Below, in pieces: positions 1 through 15,184 of a stretch of DNA of 15,184 nt; the stretch's first letter is position 1; each line of letters begins with the position of its first letter. The position numbers and the translations under genes are program-made. The DNA lies in NCBI GenBank assembly GCA_033442325.1, contig JAWQFM010000015.1:1-15184 (forward strand), in the 5' to 3' direction. This DNA is from Salpingoeca rosetta (Eukaryota; Protista; Choanoflagellata). The notes beneath the pieces were generated by a model. That model saw only the letters and a program-made list of their open reading frames with translations. It searched no databases and was not told the DNA's origin.

Positions 1-386
1 TCATCGGTGCTGTATGGGCCGTCACGGATGGCGGTTCGGATGGCGCGGTAGATGGCTGGCAGAGGTGGCTTCTTCATCAGCAGTCAGAGGATACACGTAC
101 ACCTGCCATAGATGCACGCACGCATGAACACGCAATCATAACACACACGCAGATAGAGAGTGTGAGGTCATCATGCTTCGGTTGCACTCCATGCCACGCC
201 GTTGCTGTTGCTGTTGCTGTGTTGGTGGGTCTTCACCTTGAACGATGGGCACGTGCGAAGAGGATCGACGGATATGCCGTGCGCGGTGATCGCTGACATC
301 AGGGCCGCCAATGGCAGTGCGATAGTGCAGCGGCATCTCGGGGCAGTGCGTTCTGGTAACAGTGGTGGTTGTGGTGGAGACGATGG
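1..386 (-). pseudogene. Exostosin (EXT / glycosyltransferase family 47)-like gene fragment with apparent frameshift; continues off the left edge
   Basis: Minus-strand exons 386-237 (...DPLRTCPSFK, donor GTGAAG) and 102-1 (acceptor GGCAG) join as FK|VYVYPLTADEEAT. After a 1-nt shift near 60-66 the read continues LPAIYRAIRTAIRDGPYSTD. This resembles EXT1 'FKVYVYP...SYQNILAAIEGSRFYTSDP' (recalled). The unshifted frame hits TGA. Confidence 0.6.
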
Positions 387-461
387 CTGCGTTTGTTGTG
401 TGGTGAGGCGCGCGGATGAAAGGGGATGGGGGGAGTGTTGGGAGATATCTGCAACAAACCG

Positions 462-463
<2 letters not shown>

Positions 464-503
<40 letters not shown>

Positions 504-563
504 ATACACACACACACATACACACACATACGGGTACACACACGCACACACACAAACACACGC
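464..563. repeat. Imperfect (CA)n/(TG)n microsatellite, probably intronic
   Basis: Directly visible CA run with TA/CG interruptions. Confidence 0.95.
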
Positions 564-986
564 ACTGTGTCAAAGAGTTCATTCTCTTCGGCAGACATGA
601 TGCTGTAGAGACGACGCCGTGAAGAGAGCCGCAGAGAAGGATTGCAAGACGATGGCGAGTGATGAGTGGTTCAGTGTGCACACCTCCACCACCAGCAGCA
701 GCAGCAGCAGCGGCAGCGGCGGCCGCAATGCACACGCAACAACAACACAATTCGGTGGTCGCACCTCATGTCACCATCATCCTTGTGCCGGAGCAGCGCC
801 TCCCCTTCCTCTCTTCAGCTGAAGGCGTACCCTGTGGCCCAAACACACACGAGGAACAGAGATCAGGACAACACATCGTAGCACAAGATCAAACGATTGC
901 AAGCAAAGAACCCACAGCAGACGCATGGCAGAATGACCACGTCGACGACACATATTCACACACGCTTACACATACAGTGTGCGCAT

Positions 987-1105
987 ACTTTTGAAAGCAT
1001 TCGCTCTGTCCCGCCACGAGCAGCATCTTGCCAATGTCACCAACACTTTTGAAAGCATTCGCTCTGTCCCGCCACGAGCAGCATCTTGCCAATGTCACCA
1101 ACACT
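987..1105. repeat. Perfect tandem duplication, 2 x 58 bp
   Basis: ACTTTTGAAAGCATTCGCTCTGTCCCGCCACGAGCAGCATCTTGCCAATGTCACCAAC starts at 987 and again at 1045. Confidence 0.95.
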
Positions 1106-1148
1106 CTGCCCCATCGACGCAACCAAGGGAACGTGCGCAAGAGTGATA

Positions 1149-1269
1149 AGCCGTCATCACACGGTTGCCGAGCGAAACGAGAAACACACACACACACACA
1201 CGTCGCTCAGCCGTCATCACACGGTTGCCGAGCGAAACGAGAAACACACACACACACACACGTCGCTCA
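1149..1269. repeat. Perfect tandem duplication, 2 x 60 bp
   Basis: AGCCGTCATCACACGGTTGCCGAGCGAAACGAGAAACACA...CGTCGCTC starts at 1149 and again at 1209. Confidence 0.95.
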
Positions 1270-1809
1270 CTGTCATGATGAGACGCAAGCATTCCATCAT
1301 CCTCCCCAACACTCGCGCATCACACATGTCCAGCGAGATGATGCCGCGCAAGCGGGCTGTTGTGGGGTGTGTGTGTGTGTGAAAACCACGTGTGCATGGG
1401 GCAGGTGATGAGCACCTACAGCGTGCATGCCATGTAAACTGACTTGATGGCAAACTGGGGGATGAATGACGTGTGACTGTAATCACGAGAGAAGACTGAC
1501 CGATGTCAGCGCAAATGCTGTGATTGCTCGCCCGGTACCGCTGTGGAGGTGCGTCCCACTCAAACGCGGCCTTCTGTGTTGCTGGTGCCTTGGTCTCCGC
1601 CACTCTCACTTGCCGATTCCTGTCTGTTTGTTGTTTGCGTGGGAGGAAGAGAGGATGCATCCGTGAGAATACACGTGCCAACAGCAGCAGCACCAGCACC
1701 AGCAGCAGTGATAGCAGTGACAGCAGTGGTTGTGGTTTGGAAATCGGATCACCACCGTGCACTGATACACACACACAACACACACAGAGCGGAGATGTGA
1801 TTGCACCCA

Positions 1810-2242
1810 CCTCGCAGGTGGCCGTGAGTGACACTGCTTGTCGCTTGCCTTGTGGTGTGCATATGTCAGCGGCAAGTGTTGCTAGTGCACGCTCAAGAGC
1901 GTCGTTAGGTTTCTGCAGGCCACTGCCATATCCAATCACAAGAGAACAGCACATGCTCACGTCAGCCAAGCACAACAACGACGACCTGACGACGACGAAA
2001 CCACCACTTTCAGCAGGCGCGCAGCCCCCTGCACGCATCCTTGTGCCACAAGAAGAAGGAAAGAAGGGAGTCCACACCCACACCCACAACAAGACAGCAA
2101 CAGCAACAACCGACAGCACTGCCATCACAACAGACACCGCGTCCCACGTTCACATACTTGGTTGCCTGACGCATGGAACGAACGAATAGCGCCAAGAAGA
2201 AGAAGAACAAGAAGCAGAAGTCGAGGAAGGAACAGTGGGCAT
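1810..2242 (-). pseudogene. Possible degenerate N-terminus of a type II membrane protein (perhaps the 5' part of the exostosin-like gene)
   Basis: The reading MPTVPSST...RQPSM*TWDAVSVVMAVLSVVAVAVLLWVWVW has a hydrophobic anchor preceded by an in-frame TGA (2150-2152). Candidate donors GTGAGC (~1960) and GTGGGT (~1810). No family motif recognised. Confidence 0.25.
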
Positions 2243-2523
2243 GATGTGTGTTGGCTCACCTGAGGATCGTTGACGTGATGTGACGCCTGCTTCGTGTGTG
2301 TGTGTGTGTGCATGTGTGTGTGTGTGTGTGTCAGAGACCTTTCTTCCACATTGGTCTGGTTGGCTGTTGGCTGGTGACTGGGTAGCGATCACCAACAATC
2401 CCCTCTTCCCCTCTCCCACATCTCTCTTCTCCCCCATGCTGCTGTTGCAGTGACTGCCACATCACCCCCTCCTTCCTTCCTTGCCTTGCCTTGCCTCGCT
2501 GTGTGCACTGCACCAAAGAGAAC

Positions 2524-2553
2524 AAGAAGAAGAAGAAGAAGAAGAAGAAGAAG
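2524..2553. repeat. (GAA)n microsatellite
   Basis: About 10 consecutive AAG/GAA units. Confidence 0.9.
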
Positions 2554-2858
2554 AGTGCAAGCAAGCGAGTTTGGGCTGCCACATCTCCACCCAGTCGTGT
2601 CATCGACTGATTTCAGCTTTTCCCCGTCTTCTTCTGCACAAACACGCGCAACAGACGTTTGTCGTGGCTGGTTGCGCGCAATGCACACACACACACCACA
2701 CACACACACACACGCTGCATTCGCTGCGACGAAAGGAAAGGATGGATGGGAAGGTGCGTCGTGGTGGTTGGCGGTGGTGGTTTGGTCACACTCTCAGCCA
2801 CACCAACAACAGCAGCAGCAGCAGCAGGGAGCAGCAGGGGGATATTGATGATGATGAC

Positions 2859-2864
2859 AATGAC
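2859..2864 (+). repeat. Left target-site duplication AATGAC
   Basis: The identical hexamer lies at 8415-8420, directly outside the opposite TIR. Confidence 0.9.
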
Positions 2865-2880
2865 CTGGCCTCGGACATCC
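2865..2880 (+). repeat. Left terminal inverted repeat CTGGCCTCGGACATCC
   Basis: Exact reverse complement of 8399-8414 (GGATGTCCGAGGCCAG). Confidence 0.95.
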
Positions 2881-2885
2881 TCTGC

Positions 2886-2941
2886 GTCCGCTCTGTCCGC
2901 TCTGAGATCGTCCGCTCTGAGCTGTCCGCTCGAGCGGACAG
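2886..2941. repeat. Left subterminal GTCCGCTCTG repeats plus 20-bp palindrome (putative transposase-binding sites)
   Basis: GTCCGCTCTG at 2886, 2895 and 2910; perfect palindrome CTGTCCGCTCGAGCGGACAG at 2922-2941. Confidence 0.85.
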
Positions 2942-3018
2942 ATAATTGTAAACAGCGCACATAATTATCGTGGCTCGCAGATGATTATCAATGTACCGGC
3001 GACTTTTACTTACAACAC

Positions 3019-3185
3019 TTTGGCGCCATGCAACCAACACAACAGAAACCACACACACCACAACACACACGCACCACAACACAACACACACCTTCTCAGC
3101 GGCTTCTCAGCTTCTCTTTTTCTCGCGCGCGCGCCAAACACCCTCCCGCGCGCGCCAAACAACTTCTCGCGCGCGCCTCCATTGG
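3019..3185 (+). promoter_or_regulatory. Putative transposase promoter with E2F-like TTTGGCGC sites and reverse CCAAT
   Basis: TTTGGCGC at 3019-3026; GCGCCAAA at 3131-3138 and 3152-3159 within three CGCGCGCGCC repeats; ATTGG at 3181-3185; ATG at 3260. Confidence 0.4.
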
Positions 3186-3259
3186 GCTATCTCTCATCCC
3201 ATCGTCTACCAACAGTCTCAACACGCAGGCGTTCATTTTCACGACAGAAATAAGCAACG

Positions 3260-4177
3260 ATGTCGAAGCCAGTGTTTGTTGAGGAGCTGCATACGGATGT
3301 GGCTGATGTCGTCGCATTTCACCCAACGTTCGACGTGAGTGTGATGTCAGGTCACCTTGTCTTGGGTTTGTGGTTTGGCTCAGAGTTTCCGCTCAACCTC
3401 AACCACGCATTCGCATGCATGCGTACAGGTATTCACACAGCATCTGCAAGCTGCTGGCTATTCTTCAGCGGATTGCACGTTTACCTTTGGCGGCCGTGAA
3501 GTTACTCTCAAGGAGAATTCATGGCCCTTTTTTGTGCACCAATACCAAACAGACAGCAAGACAGCTTTGCACGTGTCTCGTGTCACTCGAGTGACTCGGC
3601 GCTTCGCGTCGTCCTCAGCCCAGCCACAAGGTGACCAAGCTGTAGACCCAGACGTGCCCCTCCCCAAGAAGGCAAAGAGACCAGGAGAAACGCACAAGGC
3701 TGTCACCCTTGCGCGCGCAGTGCTGCGATCCCGCGCCCACGGAGTGAAAATCATGGGCGGAGACTACGCGTACGAACTGTCCAAAGCACAGCTTACAATC
3801 GGCACACACGAGTGCGTGTTTGTACAACTTGTTGCTGATGCACTCTTTGAACACGATGCCATGCGAAGGACGTGGTCTTTAGTACGCGACAAGCTGGTGG
3901 TCATTCCAGTGATGCGCATACCAGAGTGGCAAACGCTGGTGGCAGCCAAGCACAAGTTGGGTTTGCCTTCGCTCTGTCTTGTTGCCGGTCATGCGCTTTC
4001 AGCCCGTGCGTTCTTGGCCCAGAAGCTGGGTGCACGAGGGGTTGTATTTTGTAATGAGCGACGCAAGCACCCACAATCTCTCCTCGCTGACGTGGCGGAG
4101 TCTCTCGCACATCGTGATCTTGACTCAGAATGCGATATCCCCGTTGCGGTCGCCATGGCAGATCTATCGGCACAGTT

Positions 4178-4222
<45 letters not shown>

Positions 4223-7200
4223 CTACACATGTGTGCGCGTGTGGGTTTGTGTGGGTGAATGTATTTTGTTTTAATAGCCTGTGGTATTGGTGCTCACAGG
4301 GAGCACCTGCAATTCCCTGGGCACGTACACTTACCACGGCTCACATAGGCTGCCTTGTGTGTTACCCTTGTGTACCTACCATGTGGCAGGTGGCACGACG
4401 GAGCATCACATATGGTGCAACACCTTGAGGTACTGGCTTGCGATGGGATGGCAACTCAACGCTCTCCGGACACACCTGTGGACACGCCTGCAGAGCCGTC
4501 ATCATCCAGCGTGACCACGTTGCATGTGACAGATCCGCATGAGCACGGTGCAACCCTGGACCCGGATGAACACACTGATTCAGGCCAGGCCCTACCTGTT
4601 CTTGCAAAACAACGTGCGGAACGGATTCAGAAGATTGGCGACCTTCAGGTATTTATTGAGATGATACTGCGGGTATTCGAGGAGTCTTGTTTGGTCTGTA
4701 TATTCGAACATAAGTCTCATACGTGGCGTGCTGTCCTTTCTTGCTCCCGCTGGTGTAGGCGTTGGGTTACCGGAAGCCGCGCTTTGTTGTCCGATTTGTG
4801 CATGGCAAGAATCGCACGATGATACACGTTCTGTGCCCTGCATGCCCCCCGGCGAAAAACGAAAAGCAGTTCAGCGACATGAAAAAGGCGCGAGATCATG
4901 CCAGCACTTGCACCAACAAGACAGCGAGATCCGGGCCAGGCACGTCCTTGCAAGACATTCGTGTCTCACTGGCACGTGTTAGAAAAGCACAAGATACGCC
5001 GAGCATTGACACTGCACAGTTGACCAAGTTCATCGATTGCGAACAATGGGCTGAAGCTGGACCACCAACAGCAGATGATATTGAGCAGTATGTTTTGAAA
5101 CATTCGTTGCATTGAAGGTTGTCCATCATATTCTGCTTGAGGTGTCTCTTACTTGATGTTGACCAATGCAACAGTTCGTACTGGCTAATAAACAGAGCAT
5201 GTTTGTGTCAATGAATTCAGGTCATATGGGGGCATGTGTAATGCGCTCGAATTGTCGCTAAGACTTGGCATCGTATCCCACAGTGCACCCCACATGGAAG
5301 CCCTTCGTCTCACAATCAACCAAGTGCTGGGGGAAACAACGACGGGCATCACCAGATATTCTCCACTGTTTCACATAGCCCTTGATATAGCGCTAACGTA
5401 TGGGTGTGGGGCATTAGATGACCTCGCTCGTGCTGACCTATTGCCGTGCAGCTCCCGCACGATGAGAAGGTACTTTCTTCCAGCCCAATGCACCAATGGA
5501 GTGAACAATTCACTGTTACTTAATTTTCTCCGAGTTTCAGCCGCAAGCGGAGCGGTATTCAACAGTCCACAATGCAAGGCCATTGCGTGTGCGATTGCTG
5601 TGGATGGGCTCAGCTTAAGCAAAGACATTTGCTATGATGAAGTGTCGGACATGTTTTATGGTCCGTTACCGCCTGTGTCGCCCGAGGAGATGCGACAAAA
5701 GTTGGGTAACGTTGCTGAACTTTGGGAATGGTTAGACTCTGTCGAATGGGCAGACAATGCACATTTGGCATGCTTGACAACAGTGGACGGTGCAGTGTCC
5801 TGCCCGATTGCAGTCAACTACACATCTCACCTTCGAGGGCCTCAACAGGTATTTAAACTTGGTGCGTGCTTGGTGACACAGTGTGATATGCCTGTTGCAT
5901 CTGCGTTGGTGAATCACGCTACACGTAACACCAGTGCAATTGCATGCATCGCAGGTAGAATTGCTCATGAGCGACACGCTGAAAGGCGTTTGCCAATGTC
6001 AGCGATGCTTAGAAAACGATGTTGCGTGCCATTACGAGGAGGGTCTGGAACAGCTAGCTCAGGATTCAGCTTGTATTGCTTGCAAAGAGGCGGGTGTGCA
6101 ATGTGTCCGCATTCAGGTCGTCGTCACAGTGATGGATTCAGAGTCGAGTCAGCTTACCTGGCAGCAGAGGTTGCCTAAAACTGCCATCTGTTCCATTCCA
6201 GACATTGCACACCTCGCGAAAGCCATGAGGAATTATATCATCAACCACTACATATGGCTGGAAGGCTATCTTATCAACACTCGCCAGCTCATTTGGTTAC
6301 ACACCAACGACCTCTGTACAATTAATCCAGTTTGCTGTATTCCCCGAGATCGCACCAGCCACACTCACCTTGAACAGCTGTTGATGGCAGATATTCCTGA
6401 CGCGGTTACAGCTCACCAGCTCTATCCGGACCCAATTGACTACAAGTCGTCCTCATCTGCCACCCGTTCCCCTTATTCCTTCATCACATCGACGTGCATC
6501 GGGATGAAATACGATCTTGTTGTCGACAATGAAGTAGCTTTCCTCGTGAAGCGCTCCGATCCTTCAGTTCGCACTGAAACATCAGCTCGTGGCGTAAAGA
6601 GCGCATGCTTACTCAGTGGCACATCAAATTGGCTGCTGTTGTGTTCCACGGGAATCCTCAAGATGTCACACACAGGAAAAATCACCACGTTGAAAGTCGA
6701 GAGCACCCTGTCCACGCTAGATCATATCCACTTCCATTCTGCAAGCGAAGGGTTGGCGGTGTCAGGCAAGGCGGTTGGACGCTGTGTTATTGAAGGAGAT
6801 ACCATCCGTGTTACGGATGTTGAGCTCTTCTCAATCACGATTCGAGAAGCTGTCAGGTGTGGAGACATGATTTACTTAGCGACAGACAATGGATTGATGA
6901 AGTGTCAGGACGAGCAGCAGAGCACACCATTTATGGAAAAAGTGTGGCATCTGTCAGTCTCTGGAGATTCGGTTGTGTTTTCTTGTGCGTCAGGAATCTT
7001 CTCCTGTGTCAACGAAACAGTGACACCAGTGCTACAACGCACACTCAACTACCCTGCACCCATATCAGTGCTACGGCATACGGTGCTACTGGGTGAAAGA
7101 AACAAGGTCACAATTGTGTCCAGCACAGTACCGTTGAAACGCTACTTGAGGAAAGTACGCAATCTATACACTGCCGGGGGTTTACTTGATCGCCAGAGAA

Positions 7201-8252
7201 AGAAGGACTGCACGCTGCAGGAAGCAATAGCACACGTCCGTGATGTGCATGAATACACGGTTGACCAATACGAGCAGCAACTACAAATTACCGCAGGCAC
7301 TTCAAGCCCGGAGTCACTGCAAGGGCCAGGTGGTCTGTTTGCACGAACTCTCGTTGCCCGCCAAGAACTGTTGCTTGAAGGACTGACACGACTGAACAAA
7401 ACTCTCTCTGGAATGCTGGTGTATAGTCGAGCAATTCAAGAAGACGTCGTGGAGAGTGCCTTTGCGCAGATTCTGAAGCACACATCCGCTGCGCTCACCC
7501 AAAGAGAATTCGGTTACAAGTTCCCAAAAGTGGGACAACTGATGTTACTACGCATACAGCAGGGGCGCAAACGTCTGTTTACATTCAACCATCAGCAACG
7601 AATGTATGCAGGAGTGCAGCTTGGTACACAAACTGGTGTGCCAATCGATGCGACCTTAGAGACACCCATTAAACCGGCACTCCCAGACAGAACAGCGTCA
7701 AAGGAGCTCTATGCACGGGTCAGAGAAGTCATTGGCGACAAAACAGTTGTGTCGCGGATCCGAGGACTCAAGAAGCAGCGACCTGGCACAAAACCAGCCC
7801 TGAGGTACCTTCTCCACAGGAATGCTCTTACAAGCAACCTTGATGGTGTTGCCCTCAGCGTGATGAACGATATCGTTTTTTGTGCTCATTCATTCATGGC
7901 TATTCGTGGCCCCAATCACAAAGTATGGTTTGCACAGTTGACAGTCAATGTGTCACAACACCAACTGGATCGAGGAGCTGACCTTGCTCTGACTTGGCTT
8001 GAATGCGAGAATGACAAGTGGGTGTTTGGCAACCCGGATCTAATCTCAACAAAGTCTTTGATTTGTGACGTTTCGGAGCATATCACTCAAGACCCCTTGC
8101 ATGTGAGCGTGCAAGCGATCGCTGAAGCCAAGCAAAGCATGGCAAGCCTCATTCCACCAAGACAGAACTCAAGTGGAATTTCAGAGCGCGTCTACAGGAC
8201 TACAAAGGACGACAGACGACGACGACAAGGACAACGACAGCACCCTAGTTAA
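3260..8252 (+). CDS. P-element/THAP9-like DDE transposase, multi-domain, about 1,446 aa; exons 3260-3334, 3429-4180, 4390-4648, 4759-5087, 5221-5848, 5955-8252
   Basis: Five GT-AG introns with matching phases (0,2,0,2,0) join the ORF-track pieces into one 4,341-nt open frame. Motifs in P-transposase order: LPCSSRTMRRY; CAIAVDGLSLSKDICYD (D at 5603; cf. CVLAFDEMKVAAAFEYD); VVVTVMDSE (D at 6135; cf. VVAIVSD); PDIAHLAKAMRNY (DxxH at 6201-6212; cf. SDTPHLIKLVRNH); SRAIQEDVVESAFAQI (E at 7452; cf. SRLSQDIVEHFF). Intron 4181-4389 is the least certain junction. Confidence 0.85.
4181..4220. repeat. (GT)20 microsatellite at the 5' end of transposase intron 2
   Basis: The GT run starts exactly at the predicted phase-2 donor. 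Confidence 0.9.
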
Positions 8253-8342
8253 CACTTCAACGACCACTGTTCCTGAAGTTCCCTGTTCCTTTACCCCTTG
8301 TTCCTCATTCTGAAGGCAAAATGCATGATTTTCGCATTTCCG

Positions 8343-8384
8343 TGTCCGCTGTCCGCTCTGTGAATCTGTCCGCTGCAGCGGACA
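8343..8384. repeat. Right subterminal GTCCGCT repeats plus 18-bp palindrome
   Basis: GTCCGCT at 8344 and 8351; perfect palindrome TGTCCGCTGCAGCGGACA at 8367-8384. Confidence 0.85.
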
Positions 8385-8398
8385 AAATGCAATAGAGC

Positions 8399-8414
8399 GG
8401 ATGTCCGAGGCCAG
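8399..8414 (-). repeat. Right terminal inverted repeat
   Basis: GGATGTCCGAGGCCAG is the reverse complement of the left TIR. Confidence 0.95.
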
Positions 8415-8420
8415 AATGAC
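8415..8420 (+). repeat. Right target-site duplication AATGAC
   Basis: Identical to 2859-2864. Confidence 0.9.
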
Positions 8421-9375
8421 ACAAGCAATCCATCAATCAAGCAATCAAGCAGACGAGCAAGCACACAAGCAAGAAGCAAGCAAGCCAAACAAAGGGACAA
8501 GTATTCATTCACTCCGCTTGGACGAGCGACACGTCCACCACGTGGTGCGTGCGTGTGTGTTGTACTCACTGCTCTGCCCTCCTTTACACTGTTCCTCCCT
8601 GCCTCGCAGTCCACTCTCCCTTTCTACCCTTTGCACACCCTTTGCTTGACCTGCTCTCTGCACACCCTCTCTTCTCCACCCCCCCGCCCCTTCACTCACA
8701 CGTCTCAAGTCACATGTCTCTCATCTCACCCTTTGCTTTTGGCTGCAACGCTGCGCGTCTTCATCTCCACCACCACCACCTGTTTGGCAGGCTGACGATG
8801 AGGATGATGATGGTGGCTTGAACGACAGTACCGTGTCCTTGAGCGCGTGCCATCACCGTGTGCCACGACAACAAGAGGCACTTCCTTCTCTCTCGCTCTG
8901 TCTCGGTATGTGTGTGGCTGATGGCGTGGGGGGGGGTGTTGCCTGGGATTTCCATTCCACTGCACTGTACCTCAGTGCGCTGCGTGCCGCGACATGCACA
9001 CCACAGTTTGCACTCCTCCTCCCCCACTTATCCCCTCGGCATGTCCTTGTCCTTGTCAACCACCTCCCCTCGTCCATCACACCCCACCCCCCCCCACACC
9101 CCACACATACTCTCTCTCCTTTACCCCTGTCACGATGTGTGCTTGCTTCAAAGCAGGCCGCTGACATTGTCATCACCGCTGTCAGACGGTGGTCGGTGCC
9201 ATGCACGAGCATGGAGACAGTGAGCCAGCTCGTGGTCTCCAGCGTGGTGGCTGGAATGTGCACTGAGGTGAAGGATCCCACCACCACACTTCCGCTTCCA
9301 TGCCGCCATGGCTGACACCACTGGCACTGCTGGTTAACACGCACCAGCAGGCATCGCTCCCAGCGCCACACATGT

Positions 9376-13445: not shown

Positions 13446-15140
13446 CTTGGATGATGATGGCCTCGGCGACATTGGGGCGCGTGCGGTGGCCGAGGCGCTC
13501 AAGGACAACACCTGCCTCAAAACGCTCTTGTGCGTGGTGATGATGAATCTGCTTCGTGTGACATGCATGGTTGACTGGGGTGGCGGTGTTGCATGTTGCA
13601 CCCCTTTCTCCTCCCCTGCTTGCGCATGTTTGGACGTGTGTTCACCGTCGCTCCCTGCGGTTCTTGTGTGTCTGCACAGCCTGTGGGCCAACTCCATCGG
13701 TCCTGAGGGCGCTGTGGCGTTGGCGGAGATGCTGAAGCACAACACAACCCTTGAAATACTCAAGTGAGTGTGTACACGCACACATGCACACACATGTGGG
13801 CTGCGTCACTGCCTTGGACCTTATCGTACACATGTGCCCATGTGTGGTTGATGACTGTGTTGCCACCCACAGCAATCATCATCACGCACTCACTCTGACT
13901 TCCTCACTCACCTCATCCATGTGGCATCATTCCTCTGCGTGGCATTCACCATACCGTCGTGACAGCCTGGACAACAATCCCATCGGCGATGAGGGCGGAG
14001 ATGCTGAAGCACAACACAACCCTTGAAATACTCAAGTGAGTGTGTACACGCACACATGCACACACATGTGGGCTGCGTCACTGCCTTGGACCTTATCATG
14101 CGCTCATGTGTGGCTGGTGGGGTGGGGTTCAACGACTGTGTTGCCACCCACCCGCGGCAGTCATCACTCACTCACTCACTCTTCCTCATCCATGTGGCAT
14201 CATTCCTCTGCGTGGCATTCACCATACCGTCGTGACAGCCTGGACAACAATCCCATCGGCGATGAGGGCGCTGTGGCGTTGGCGGAGATGTTGAAGCACA
14301 ACACGGCCCTCGAAGAACTCCGGTGAGTGTGTACACGCACACATGCACACACGTATGCTGTGTCACTGCCGTTGCACCTTATCACGTGCACATGTGTGGT
14401 TGATGGGGTGGGGTTCAACGACTGTGTTGCCACCCACAGCAATCATCATCACGCACTCACTCACTCACTCTTCCTCATCCATGTGGCATCATCCCTCTGC
14501 GTGGCATCATACCTCTTGACAGCCTGAGTGAGAACTCCATCGGTCCTGAGGGCGCCGCGGCGTTGGCGGAGATGCTGAAGCACAACACGACCCTCACAGT
14601 ACTTGGGTGAGTGTGTACACGCACACATGCACATGTATGCTGCGTCACTGCCTGTTGCACCTTATTACGTGCACATGTGTGGTTGATGACTGTGTTGCCA
14701 CCCACAACAATCATCATCACTCACTCACTCACTCTTCCTCATCCATGTGGCATCATCCCCCTGCGTGGCATCATACCGTCTTGACAGCCTGAGCAACAAC
14801 TCCATCGGCGATAAGGGCGCCGTGGCGTTGGCGGAGATGCTGAAGCACAACACGACCCTCACATGGCTCGGGTGAGTGTGGACACGCACACGCACACATG
14901 CACACACATGTATGCTGCGTCACTGCTGTTGCACCTTTATCACGTGCACATGTGTATGGGTTCAACGACTGCGTTGCCACCCACAGCAATCATCATCACG
15001 CTCTTCCTCATCCATGTGGCATCATCGCCCTGCGTGGCATCATACCATCTTGACAGCCTGCAAATTAATCCCATCAGCGATGAGGGCGCTGTGGCGTTAG
15101 CGGAGATGCTGAAGCACAACACGGCCCTCGAAGAACTCCG
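13446..15140 (+). CDS. Partial LRR protein gene (ribonuclease-inhibitor/NLRC3-type 28-aa repeats), one repeat per 84-bp exon: 13446-13529, 13680-13763, 13966-14035 (70 bp, frameshifted), 14239-14322, 14523-14606, 14788-14871, 15057-15140
   Basis: Each exon is bounded by CAG and GT(G) in phase 2. Exons after the first encode LxxNxIGxEGAxALAEMLKHNTxLxxL; the first is a diverged LDDDGLGDIGARAVAEALKDNTCLKTL. A GTGAGT donor at 13138 suggests an upstream exon in the gap. The gene probably continues past the window end. Confidence 0.88.
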
Positions 15141-15184
15141 GTGAGTGTGTACACGCACACATGCACACACGTATGCTGTGTCAC
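13680..15184 (+). repeat. Tandem exon+intron repeat array, period 265-286 bp
   Basis: Introns share GTGAGTGTGTACACGCACACATGCAC...GACTGTGTTGCCACCCAC...CCTCATCCATGTGGCATCAT...GACAG. Confidence 0.93.

Follow-up and report, generated by a model that had tools for sequence, protein, structure and literature searches.

The window analysed here, 15,184 bases long, opens contig C15 in the genome of the choanoflagellate Salpingoeca rosetta, and the assembly searched comprised 55.4 Mb in 68 contigs. Near the start of this contig lies a 5,550-bp insertion (window 2865-8414) that, with good confidence, is an autonomous-looking cut-and-paste DNA transposon with one gene of six exons. The insertion begins and ends with perfect terminal inverted repeats (TIRs) of 16 bp: the left TIR (2865-2880, plus strand, beginning CTGGCCTCGGACATCC) is complementary at 16/16 bases to the right TIR (8399-8414, minus strand), and complementarity was 18/19 over 19 nt. 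The hexamer AATGAC lies directly outside each TIR, at 2859-2864 on the left and at 8415-8420 on the right, and this target site duplication (TSD) is exactly 6 bp long, with the seventh base mismatched on either side. Perfect 16-bp TIRs and a perfect AATGAC duplication had been reported in an initial annotation of this DNA, and both were borne out.

The initial annotation had also pointed to the empty site expected from these boundaries. The corresponding pattern, GATGATGATGAC-AATGAC-ACAAGCAATCC, was recovered from 11 other places in the genome with 0 to 3 mismatches, and the reversed control pattern from 0. Each of these paralogous empty sites, of which there are at least 11, contains AATGAC once, and therefore the insertion boundaries and the 6-bp duplication are fixed exactly. 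The insertion combines the features of a class II TIR transposon, namely TIRs, a TSD, known empty sites and, in the structural model of a relative described below, a DDE transposase with an RNase H fold.

Both flanks of the element (window 1-2864 and 8415-8700) belong to a repeat of about 15 copies that are 77-98% identical, examples being C29:897241-897824, C32:774903-775509, C27:26350-26939 and C27:1048836-1049384. In one orientation the copies are set back from contig starts by between a few and about 30 kb, and in the other they lie at high coordinates; the repeat was found at both ends of C26, C27 and C32, and on contigs of known length, such as C18, C21 and C36, such positions fall near the ends. 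A "common sub-telomeric sequence" has been reported for S. rosetta (PMC12572184), and the flank repeat is probably this sequence. It is transcribed, as RNA reads were found over 8421-8600. On the right flank, identity to the nearest copies reaches 97-98%, and the element is present in none of the other copies, which argues that the insertion is not ancient relative to the repeat.

The heptamer GTCCGCT is clustered at the ends of the element, with five repeats on the left (2886-2939, plus strand, including a palindrome at 2924-2939) and four on the right (8344-8383, plus strand, including a palindrome at 8368-8383), so that there is one palindromic pair at each end. All of the occurrences in the 15-kb window (9/9) are within 75 bp of the two ends, the expected number being 1.7, and none of 200 shuffles reached nine. 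These subterminal repeats are candidate transposase binding sites. Farther inside, about 85 bp upstream of the ATG, there are 2.7 copies of a 21-bp GC-rich repeat that holds GCGCGCCAAAC (3122-3177, plus strand), and a similar palindromic TTGGCGCCAAA is present upstream of the start codon in a marine relative (L050 6975-6995). This GC-rich repeat is a candidate promoter element; we take both sequences to resemble E2F-type sites, which would hint at cell-cycle-linked transcription.

The six-exon gene and its product

Joining of the six exons gave a coding sequence that is 4,341 nt long with its stop codon and has 1,446 codons and 0 internal stops, and all five introns are GT-AG. The exons, all on the plus strand, are located at 3260-3334 (exon 1, amino acids (aa) 1-25), 3429-4180 (exon 2, aa 26-275, a conserved N-terminal domain), 4390-4648 (exon 3, aa 276-362, an acidic low-complexity linker), 4759-5087 (exon 4, aa 363-471, which holds a zinc finger), 5221-5848 (exon 5, aa 472-681, a helical region resembling a helix-turn-helix (HTH) and RNase H strands 1 to 3) and 5955-8252 (exon 6, aa 682-1446 and the stop codon, the rest of the transposase in one open frame).

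This splicing model is derived from frame continuity, GT-AG sites and conservation across species. The exon 6 product was found to be 30-39% identical along its whole length to marine proteins, and a 963-aa marine protein is colinear with spliced aa 521-1439 at 33% identity, spanning the exon 5/6 junction. Farther upstream, aa 43-290 and aa 361-471 have counterparts in relatives that are 31-43% identical and keep both order and strand (31-32% for aa 43-290 in L050 and L054), and exon 1 has a homologous exon and donor position in the marine relative L050 (1748-1832). Exon 3 was placed by frame continuity and GT-AG sites only, since no conservation of aa 276-362 was found in the relatives compared and this exon is without cross-species support. 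The uninterrupted spliced frame of about 1,446 aa described in the initial annotation was recovered in full, and its joining is supported across species save for exon 3; the RNA data described below speak neither for nor against it.

The locus overlaps the hypothetical gene PTSG_05793 of S. rosetta ATCC 50818, the 1,081-aa public model of which matches the conserved frame in patches only and omits the segments that carry the candidate catalytic residues D742 and E1181. Because it skips these segments, the public model appears to be mis-modelled; a literature search for the locus tag found nothing. An alternative is that our frame is over-joined, the N-terminal 500 or so residues being a separate gene or untranslated and the real transposase being about 940 aa long. 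The public model differs from ours, there is no RNA evidence for the joining, exon 3 is unconserved, and metagenome gene callers give products of 726-970 aa. However, introns seem to have been disregarded in the gene calling behind those products, the differing public model is the one that lacks D742 and E1181, and strand and order are preserved in the relatives for the N-terminal domain, the finger exon and also exon 1. We therefore regard over-joining as quite improbable and describe the 1,446-aa product below.

The N-terminal domain of about 250 aa is conserved, and it had no match in Pfam or in the ESM Atlas. Part of it (aa 155-275) is 33% identical to the product of an open reading frame (ORF) on contig C36 (C36:552242-555313; L017 3242-6316). 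This single ORF of 1,024 aa, which had no Pfam match, shares the N-terminal domain with the transposase (33% identity over 122 aa) and nothing else; it may belong to the host or to another kind of mobile element.

The zinc finger C388-x2-C391-x17-H409-x3-C413 is encoded at 4834-4911 (plus strand), and its pattern, CPxCP...F(S/T)D..KA..HA..(H/C), is conserved in the relatives L050, L054 and L064. The finger of the family can be written as C-x2-C-x16/17-H-x3-C/H, a BED-like spacing, and the product of the finger exon was not matched by Pfam zf-BED.

The catalytic region is divided over exons 5 and 6. D600 (5603-5605, plus strand), in the family-wide motif AVDG, is a candidate for the first catalytic Asp. 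A family-wide cysteine cluster, CxxC...C...CxxC...C (aa 694-731, 5991-6104, plus strand), lies between the first core helix and strand 4 and would bind zinc. It is followed by the second Asp, D742 in DSESSQ, and by D764xxH767xxK770xxR773N774 (together 6135-6224, plus strand), of which the D and the H are nearly invariant in alignment A2. An alpha-helical region (aa ~1071-1216, 7122-7559, plus strand; helices 587-731 in the relative's model) carries QED1178VVE1181S, of which Q, E, D, V, E and S are invariant in alignment A3, and E1181 (7452-7454, plus strand) is a candidate for the third catalytic residue. Near the C terminus there is a putative beta-rich domain (aa ~1328-1386, 7893-8069, plus strand) that corresponds to model strands 840-894, where the predicted local distance difference test score (pLDDT) is partly low, and in which W/WLE residues are conserved. 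The motifs AVD600G, MD742SESSQ, PD764IAH767LAK770AMR773N774 and QED1178VVE1181S are found family-wide, and each of the 53 columns invariant among five relatives (53/53) is retained in the window protein. The proposal of the initial annotation that the catalytic motifs follow the pattern of P element and THAP9 transposases is supported by D600, D742, D764xxH767xxKxxRN and D1178xxE1181.

Between strand 5 and the helical region, the catalytic domain appears to be interrupted by a six-bladed beta-propeller of the NHL type (aa ~832-1071, 6405-7124, plus strand), as mapped from the structural model of the relative. Residues 334-594 of this model matched the NHL domain of Brat (1q7f) with a Z score of 23.9 over 241/279 residues, and matched Pizza6 with a template modelling (TM) score of 0.74; the ESM Atlas agrees on a propeller. 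The Pfam NHL family was matched weakly and in one member only (E 0.005). The modelled fold, from which no function is implied, is conserved even though some members share only 20-25% identity. About 110 residues of the helical region separate the propeller from the candidate catalytic Glu. In a literature search for propeller-bearing transposases, no paper with a beta-propeller inside the insertion domain of a DDE transposase was found. RAG1-RAG2 and ProtoRAG offer an analogy, in that a DDE RNase H recombinase works with a six-bladed beta-propeller. RAG, however, has a Transib-like core, and its kelch-type propeller is a protein apart, whereas the propeller predicted here is of the NHL type and is fused in cis inside a P-like core. 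The likeness is an analogy only, with nothing pointing to a common origin or role.

Related elements and the P element transposases

An exhaustive HMMER search of 1.8 billion representatives with exon 6 returned 16 clusters only, which consist of PTSG_05793, its paralogue PTSG_06860 on contig C18, and unnamed marine-metagenome proteins including some from Tara Oceans. None of the 16 carries a P or THAP9 source name. A scan of JGI metagenomes with alignment A3 found no relative, and a homologue search with alignment A1, dominated by word candidates, yielded just one already known member.

Element ends were recovered for several of these relatives. The marine element encoding protein P0021 has perfect TIRs of 34 bp, of which 14 of the first 16 bases are the same as in the window element, and a TSD of AAAAGC that was found in two independent samples; a second, different right flank places this element at no fewer than two insertion sites. 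The C18 element (C18:718363-728582; L015/L016), 25-36% identical to the window element, carries PTSG_06860, and it has perfect TIRs of 30 bp that begin CTGGGGGG and a TSD of AAGATG. A copia-like pol fragment (RVT_2, rve) on the opposite strand interrupts this element and is bracketed by a 1,268-bp duplication of transposase sequence with 99.8% identity that may be a rearrangement or an assembly artefact. For the marine element encoding P0017, only the right end was recovered, ending ...GCGGCTGTCCGCATGCAG, because a microsatellite and the subterminal palindrome both interrupt the assemblies; this element shares its GTCCGCTCTG repeats and its palindrome with the window element.

The termini, CTG followed by 3-5 bases and (C)GACA, are common to five lineages with 20-40% protein identity. 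The TSD was 6 bp in all three of the elements with matched flanks (AATGAC, AAGATG and AAAAGC), which bears out the 6-bp length given in the initial annotation. That annotation had looked to further copies in the genome for this comparison; searches with both ends returned the single copy only, and it was two related elements that supplied the other 6-bp TSDs.

The relationship to known transposases was evaluated by structure prediction. The full model of the 963-aa relative had a pLDDT of 72.8 and a predicted TM score of 0.68, and its N-terminal core alone had a pLDDT of 72.2. When the core was compared with the PDB by Foldseek, E values below 1e-3 were obtained only for two Drosophila P element transposase entries (3.3e-7 and 9.5e-7), and the next matches were a foamy-virus integrase (0.045) and Transib (0.057). 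VIA-align likewise placed the P transposase structure 6p5a first for the core (Z 8.6, 221 residues), with retroviral integrases at Z 7.5 or less. For the full model, the alignment with 6p5a had a Z of 22.1 and a root-mean-square deviation of 3.7 over 376 residues (model 20-766, chain 148-569), and 6p5a was the only non-propeller entry in the top 50. The structural alignment begins at P transposase residue 148/159, and identity in these alignments was only 12-14%.

Among the ESM Atlas neighbours of the core, every Pfam-annotated cluster is of the THAP9/P type (PF21787, PF21788, PF21789 or PF12017). A weak match to PF21787, the N-terminal part of the TNP-like RNase H domain, recurs in the exon 5 product and in three relatives (12.6-13.9 bits, compared to a cut-off of 24.6), and was the only Pfam match among the six exon products (E 0.17). 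A genome search with PF21787 gave no match even in control genomes and hence was uninformative, phmmer of exons 5 and 6 against the PDB gave nothing relevant, and an ESM Atlas feature search returned nothing for the relative or the N-terminal domain. Three other ESM Atlas neighbours of the core (rows 1, 3 and 6) are unannotated basidiomycete clusters as close as the annotated THAP9/P clusters, and these may be further unrecognised P-related lineages in fungi.

The predicted fold and domain order are those of the P superfamily, as represented by Drosophila P transposase (PDB 6P5A/6PE2) and the THAP9/P group (P, 1360/Hoppel, Galileo and Pdre): an HTH-like region followed by an RNase H domain that is split by an insertion after strand 5, together with the D...D...D(2)H...K..RN...D-x-x-E pattern, TIRs with subterminal repeats, and a multi-exon gene. 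The modelled structure thus supports a P-related catalytic core. The differences are also numerous. The S. rosetta element has no THAP match (PF05485 matched no exon product and no relative) and has instead a C2HC/C2H2 finger with BED-like spacing; its protein has the N-terminal domain of about 250 aa, the cysteine cluster within its RNase H domain and an NHL-type propeller, and is 1,446 aa long compared to 751-900; its termini are CTG...CAG rather than CA...TG; and its TSD is 6 bp, whereas the range for the P superfamily is 7-9 bp (PMC3698922, PMC7776569). In P transposase, an all-helical GTP-binding insertion domain lies between strand 5 and helix 4 (PMC7776569). The helical region after the propeller is within the range aligned to 6p5a, and PF21788, the GTP-binding domain family, is absent.

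The element could be merely a divergent member of the P superfamily, with the 6-bp TSD, the lack of a THAP domain and the extra domains all within tolerated variation, and its P transposase top match, its THAP9/P Atlas neighbours, the shared D(2)H motif and a superfamily TSD that already spans 7-9 bp (PMC3698922) are consistent with this. We consider it rather unlikely, in view of the 12-14% identity, the failure of any Pfam P family to reach its cut-off (the C-terminal and GTP-binding families being unmatched altogether), the absence of a THAP match, the CTG...CAG termini, a 6-bp TSD that is constant in three elements, the retention of the propeller across members 20-25% identical and the 16 clusters without a P or THAP9 name. 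A lineage distinct from described P elements, as the initial annotation had suggested, is supported by these same features. We conclude that the element is probably a class II transposon of a deep, uncatalogued lineage related to the P element and THAP9 transposases; this lineage may be either a deep P branch or a new superfamily.

Membership in another superfamily of the C/DxxH group, Dada chiefly and Kolobok or hAT as alternatives, is extremely unlikely. Dada elements (Kojima and Jurka 2013, PMC3706591) resemble the S. rosetta element in having TSDs of 6-7 bp, a multi-exon gene for a transposase of about 1,400 aa, DxxH and zinc fingers, and Dada-U6_DR has 1,402 aa, D567, D635, E811 and 6-bp TSDs (PMC3706591). 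However, Dada elements are without TIRs and insert in tRNA and snRNA genes, and their core motifs are unrelated (PMC3706591): the strings MDSTKK, VDRDCC, LDVWHFMRRF and SLESFHLHLNRF differ from AVDGLS, MDSESSQ, PDIAHLAKAMRN and QEDVVES of the S. rosetta element. Dada membership was rejected on account of the TIRs of 16-34 bp, of targets other than RNA genes and of the differing motifs. Kolobok is likewise a member of the C/DxxH group with zinc fingers inserted into its catalytic region, but its finger is downstream of DxxH, whereas that of the S. rosetta element is upstream of the second Asp, and it has TTAA duplications and RR..YY termini (PMC9587614). TSDs of AATGAC, AAGATG and AAAAGC and CT..AG termini led to the rejection of Kolobok. 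As for hAT, the BED-like spacing of the finger recalls this superfamily, but Hermes, a solved hAT transposase, was not in the top 50 structural matches, in which P transposase was first.

Countervailing evidence, copy number and activity

Several results weigh against the interpretation of the insertion as an autonomous transposon of a P-related lineage. The protein that was folded is the 963-aa relative, 33% identical, and not the window's own protein, and the alignments used for structure prediction were shallow (11-14 rows, mean pLDDT 72-73). PF21788, PF21789, PF12596 and PF12017 had no match in the window protein or its relatives, and the family profile, when searched against the PDB, missed 6p5a and gave only weak matches to G-beta WD40 proteins (E 0.07). 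No structure exists for Kolobok or Dada, so that the structural ranking cannot separate them from P, and both are set apart by TSD, termini and motifs only. A distant marine member (L058/L063; L063 35-6014, 5,980 bp, JGI sample 3300031223) has perfect TIRs of 22 bp and flanks of AACAAG and CCTTGA with no duplication; its contig may join two insertion sites in a chimeric assembly, as for L054, or this clade may behave differently. In S. rosetta, the element is present as a single copy, and genome-wide end searches found no second TIR pair and no miniature inverted-repeat transposable element (MITE). The only other trace in the genome is a 189-bp fragment (C21:1141856-1142044, minus strand) that is 96.3% identical to window 6972-7160, at the propeller end, and that has two in-frame TGA codons and no TIRs nearby; it is either a trace of another lost copy or captured filler DNA. 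Finally, in two 2026 RNA-seq runs, both sampled at about 26%, zero reads were found between 3247 and 8221, with the flanking repeat covered.

Both ends are unique in the genome, the two TIRs being the only exact copies of the terminal 16-mer, and a genome search with two mismatches allowed was near background (210 matches, compared to 134 for a control). One MITE candidate on contig C2, consisting of two near-TIR matches 142 bp apart, was rejected because it is ordinary GC-rich coding-like sequence. Two further sequencing runs cover the element as unspliced, DNA-type contigs; with these and zero element reads, the RNA data neither support nor contradict the splicing. Loose read ends at 8415, in RNA and DNA, show the empty-site form, which is attributed to the paralogous repeat copies and is no evidence of excision or polymorphism at the locus. 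As to mobility, a single insertion site was observed in S. rosetta and two or more for the marine relative. Elsewhere in the window, at 14122-15169, there is a 269-bp tandem repeat of 3.8 copies with 80% match.

It is a serious possibility, though a little short of even, that the element is an immobile fossil, the last copy of its kind, which would be structurally intact but silenced and might carry subtle inactivating changes. The single copy without derivatives and the zero reads in two runs fit this, as does the location in the common subtelomeric sequence, since S. rosetta subtelomeres are reported to be rich in H3K27me3 (PMC12572184); in addition, the sister element on C18 is interrupted and the C21 fragment is decayed. 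However, the TIRs and TSD are perfect, the frame of 1,446 codons is unbroken and all 53 invariant columns are kept, and the element is in no other copy of the subtelomeric repeat, of which the nearest copies show 97-98% right-flank identity. The description of the element in the initial annotation as probably young, potentially still active and usable as a tool is speculative.

For the element as a DNA transposon, the most likely mechanism is ordinary DDE cut-and-paste with a 6-bp stagger. By homology, the finger (aa 388-413) and the helical HTH-like region would bind the GTCCGCT subterminal repeats and the CTG..CGGACA termini, and a multimer would pair the element ends. The split RNase H domain (D600, D742 and E1181, with D764xxH767 and D1178) would then cleave the ends and join the 3' ends to the target strands at a 6-bp stagger, the repair of which would give the 6-bp duplication. 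For the propeller, which is predicted to interrupt the catalytic domain after strand 5, the most plausible guess is contact with nucleic acid or chromatin at the target or the donor. The binding sites, the catalytic residues, the stagger and any present activity are inferences; what the data themselves establish is the insertion with its boundaries and TSD, the intact frame, an architecture and termini common to the family, and a structural kinship with P transposase.

Meaning for S. rosetta and the P/THAP9 transposases

The published catalogue of S. rosetta transposable elements contains Helitron, Harbinger, MULE, Sola1, two Tigger and one Tc1/mariner, which are seven DNA families (PMC6875170). 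The element matches none of these seven (PMC6875170), and the supposition of the initial annotation that it might already be listed in a published choanoflagellate catalogue was not borne out, as it is absent from this one (PMC6875170). It adds an eighth DNA transposon family for S. rosetta, with a disrupted sister on C18, and its gene model corrects PTSG_05793.

We put forward only tentatively, as a possibility that is somewhat doubtful, that the element is the founding, still-intact member of a new DDE lineage of superfamily rank that is sister to P/THAP9. If so, this superfamily would combine a BED-like finger where P has THAP, an NHL propeller fused in cis within the insertion domain, termini of CTG..CGGACA and a 6-bp stagger, and it would occur among the nearest unicellular kin of animals and in marine protists. 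Both P/THAP9 transposases and the THAP domain are considered typical of animals, and a structurally P-like enzyme that has another DNA-binding finger and is present in the animals' sister group as well as in marine plankton offers an outgroup for the origin of P/THAP9 and of the GTP-binding insertion domain. The propeller architecture offers a testable case of accessory domains that shape the handling of ends or targets. Should the protein prove active, the element's conserved, short ends together with the repeats would make a compact donor for insertional mutagenesis in this choanoflagellate model, and if the element is mobile, it would be a native transposon tool for S. rosetta and would exemplify, in nature, a DDE recombinase assisted by a propeller.

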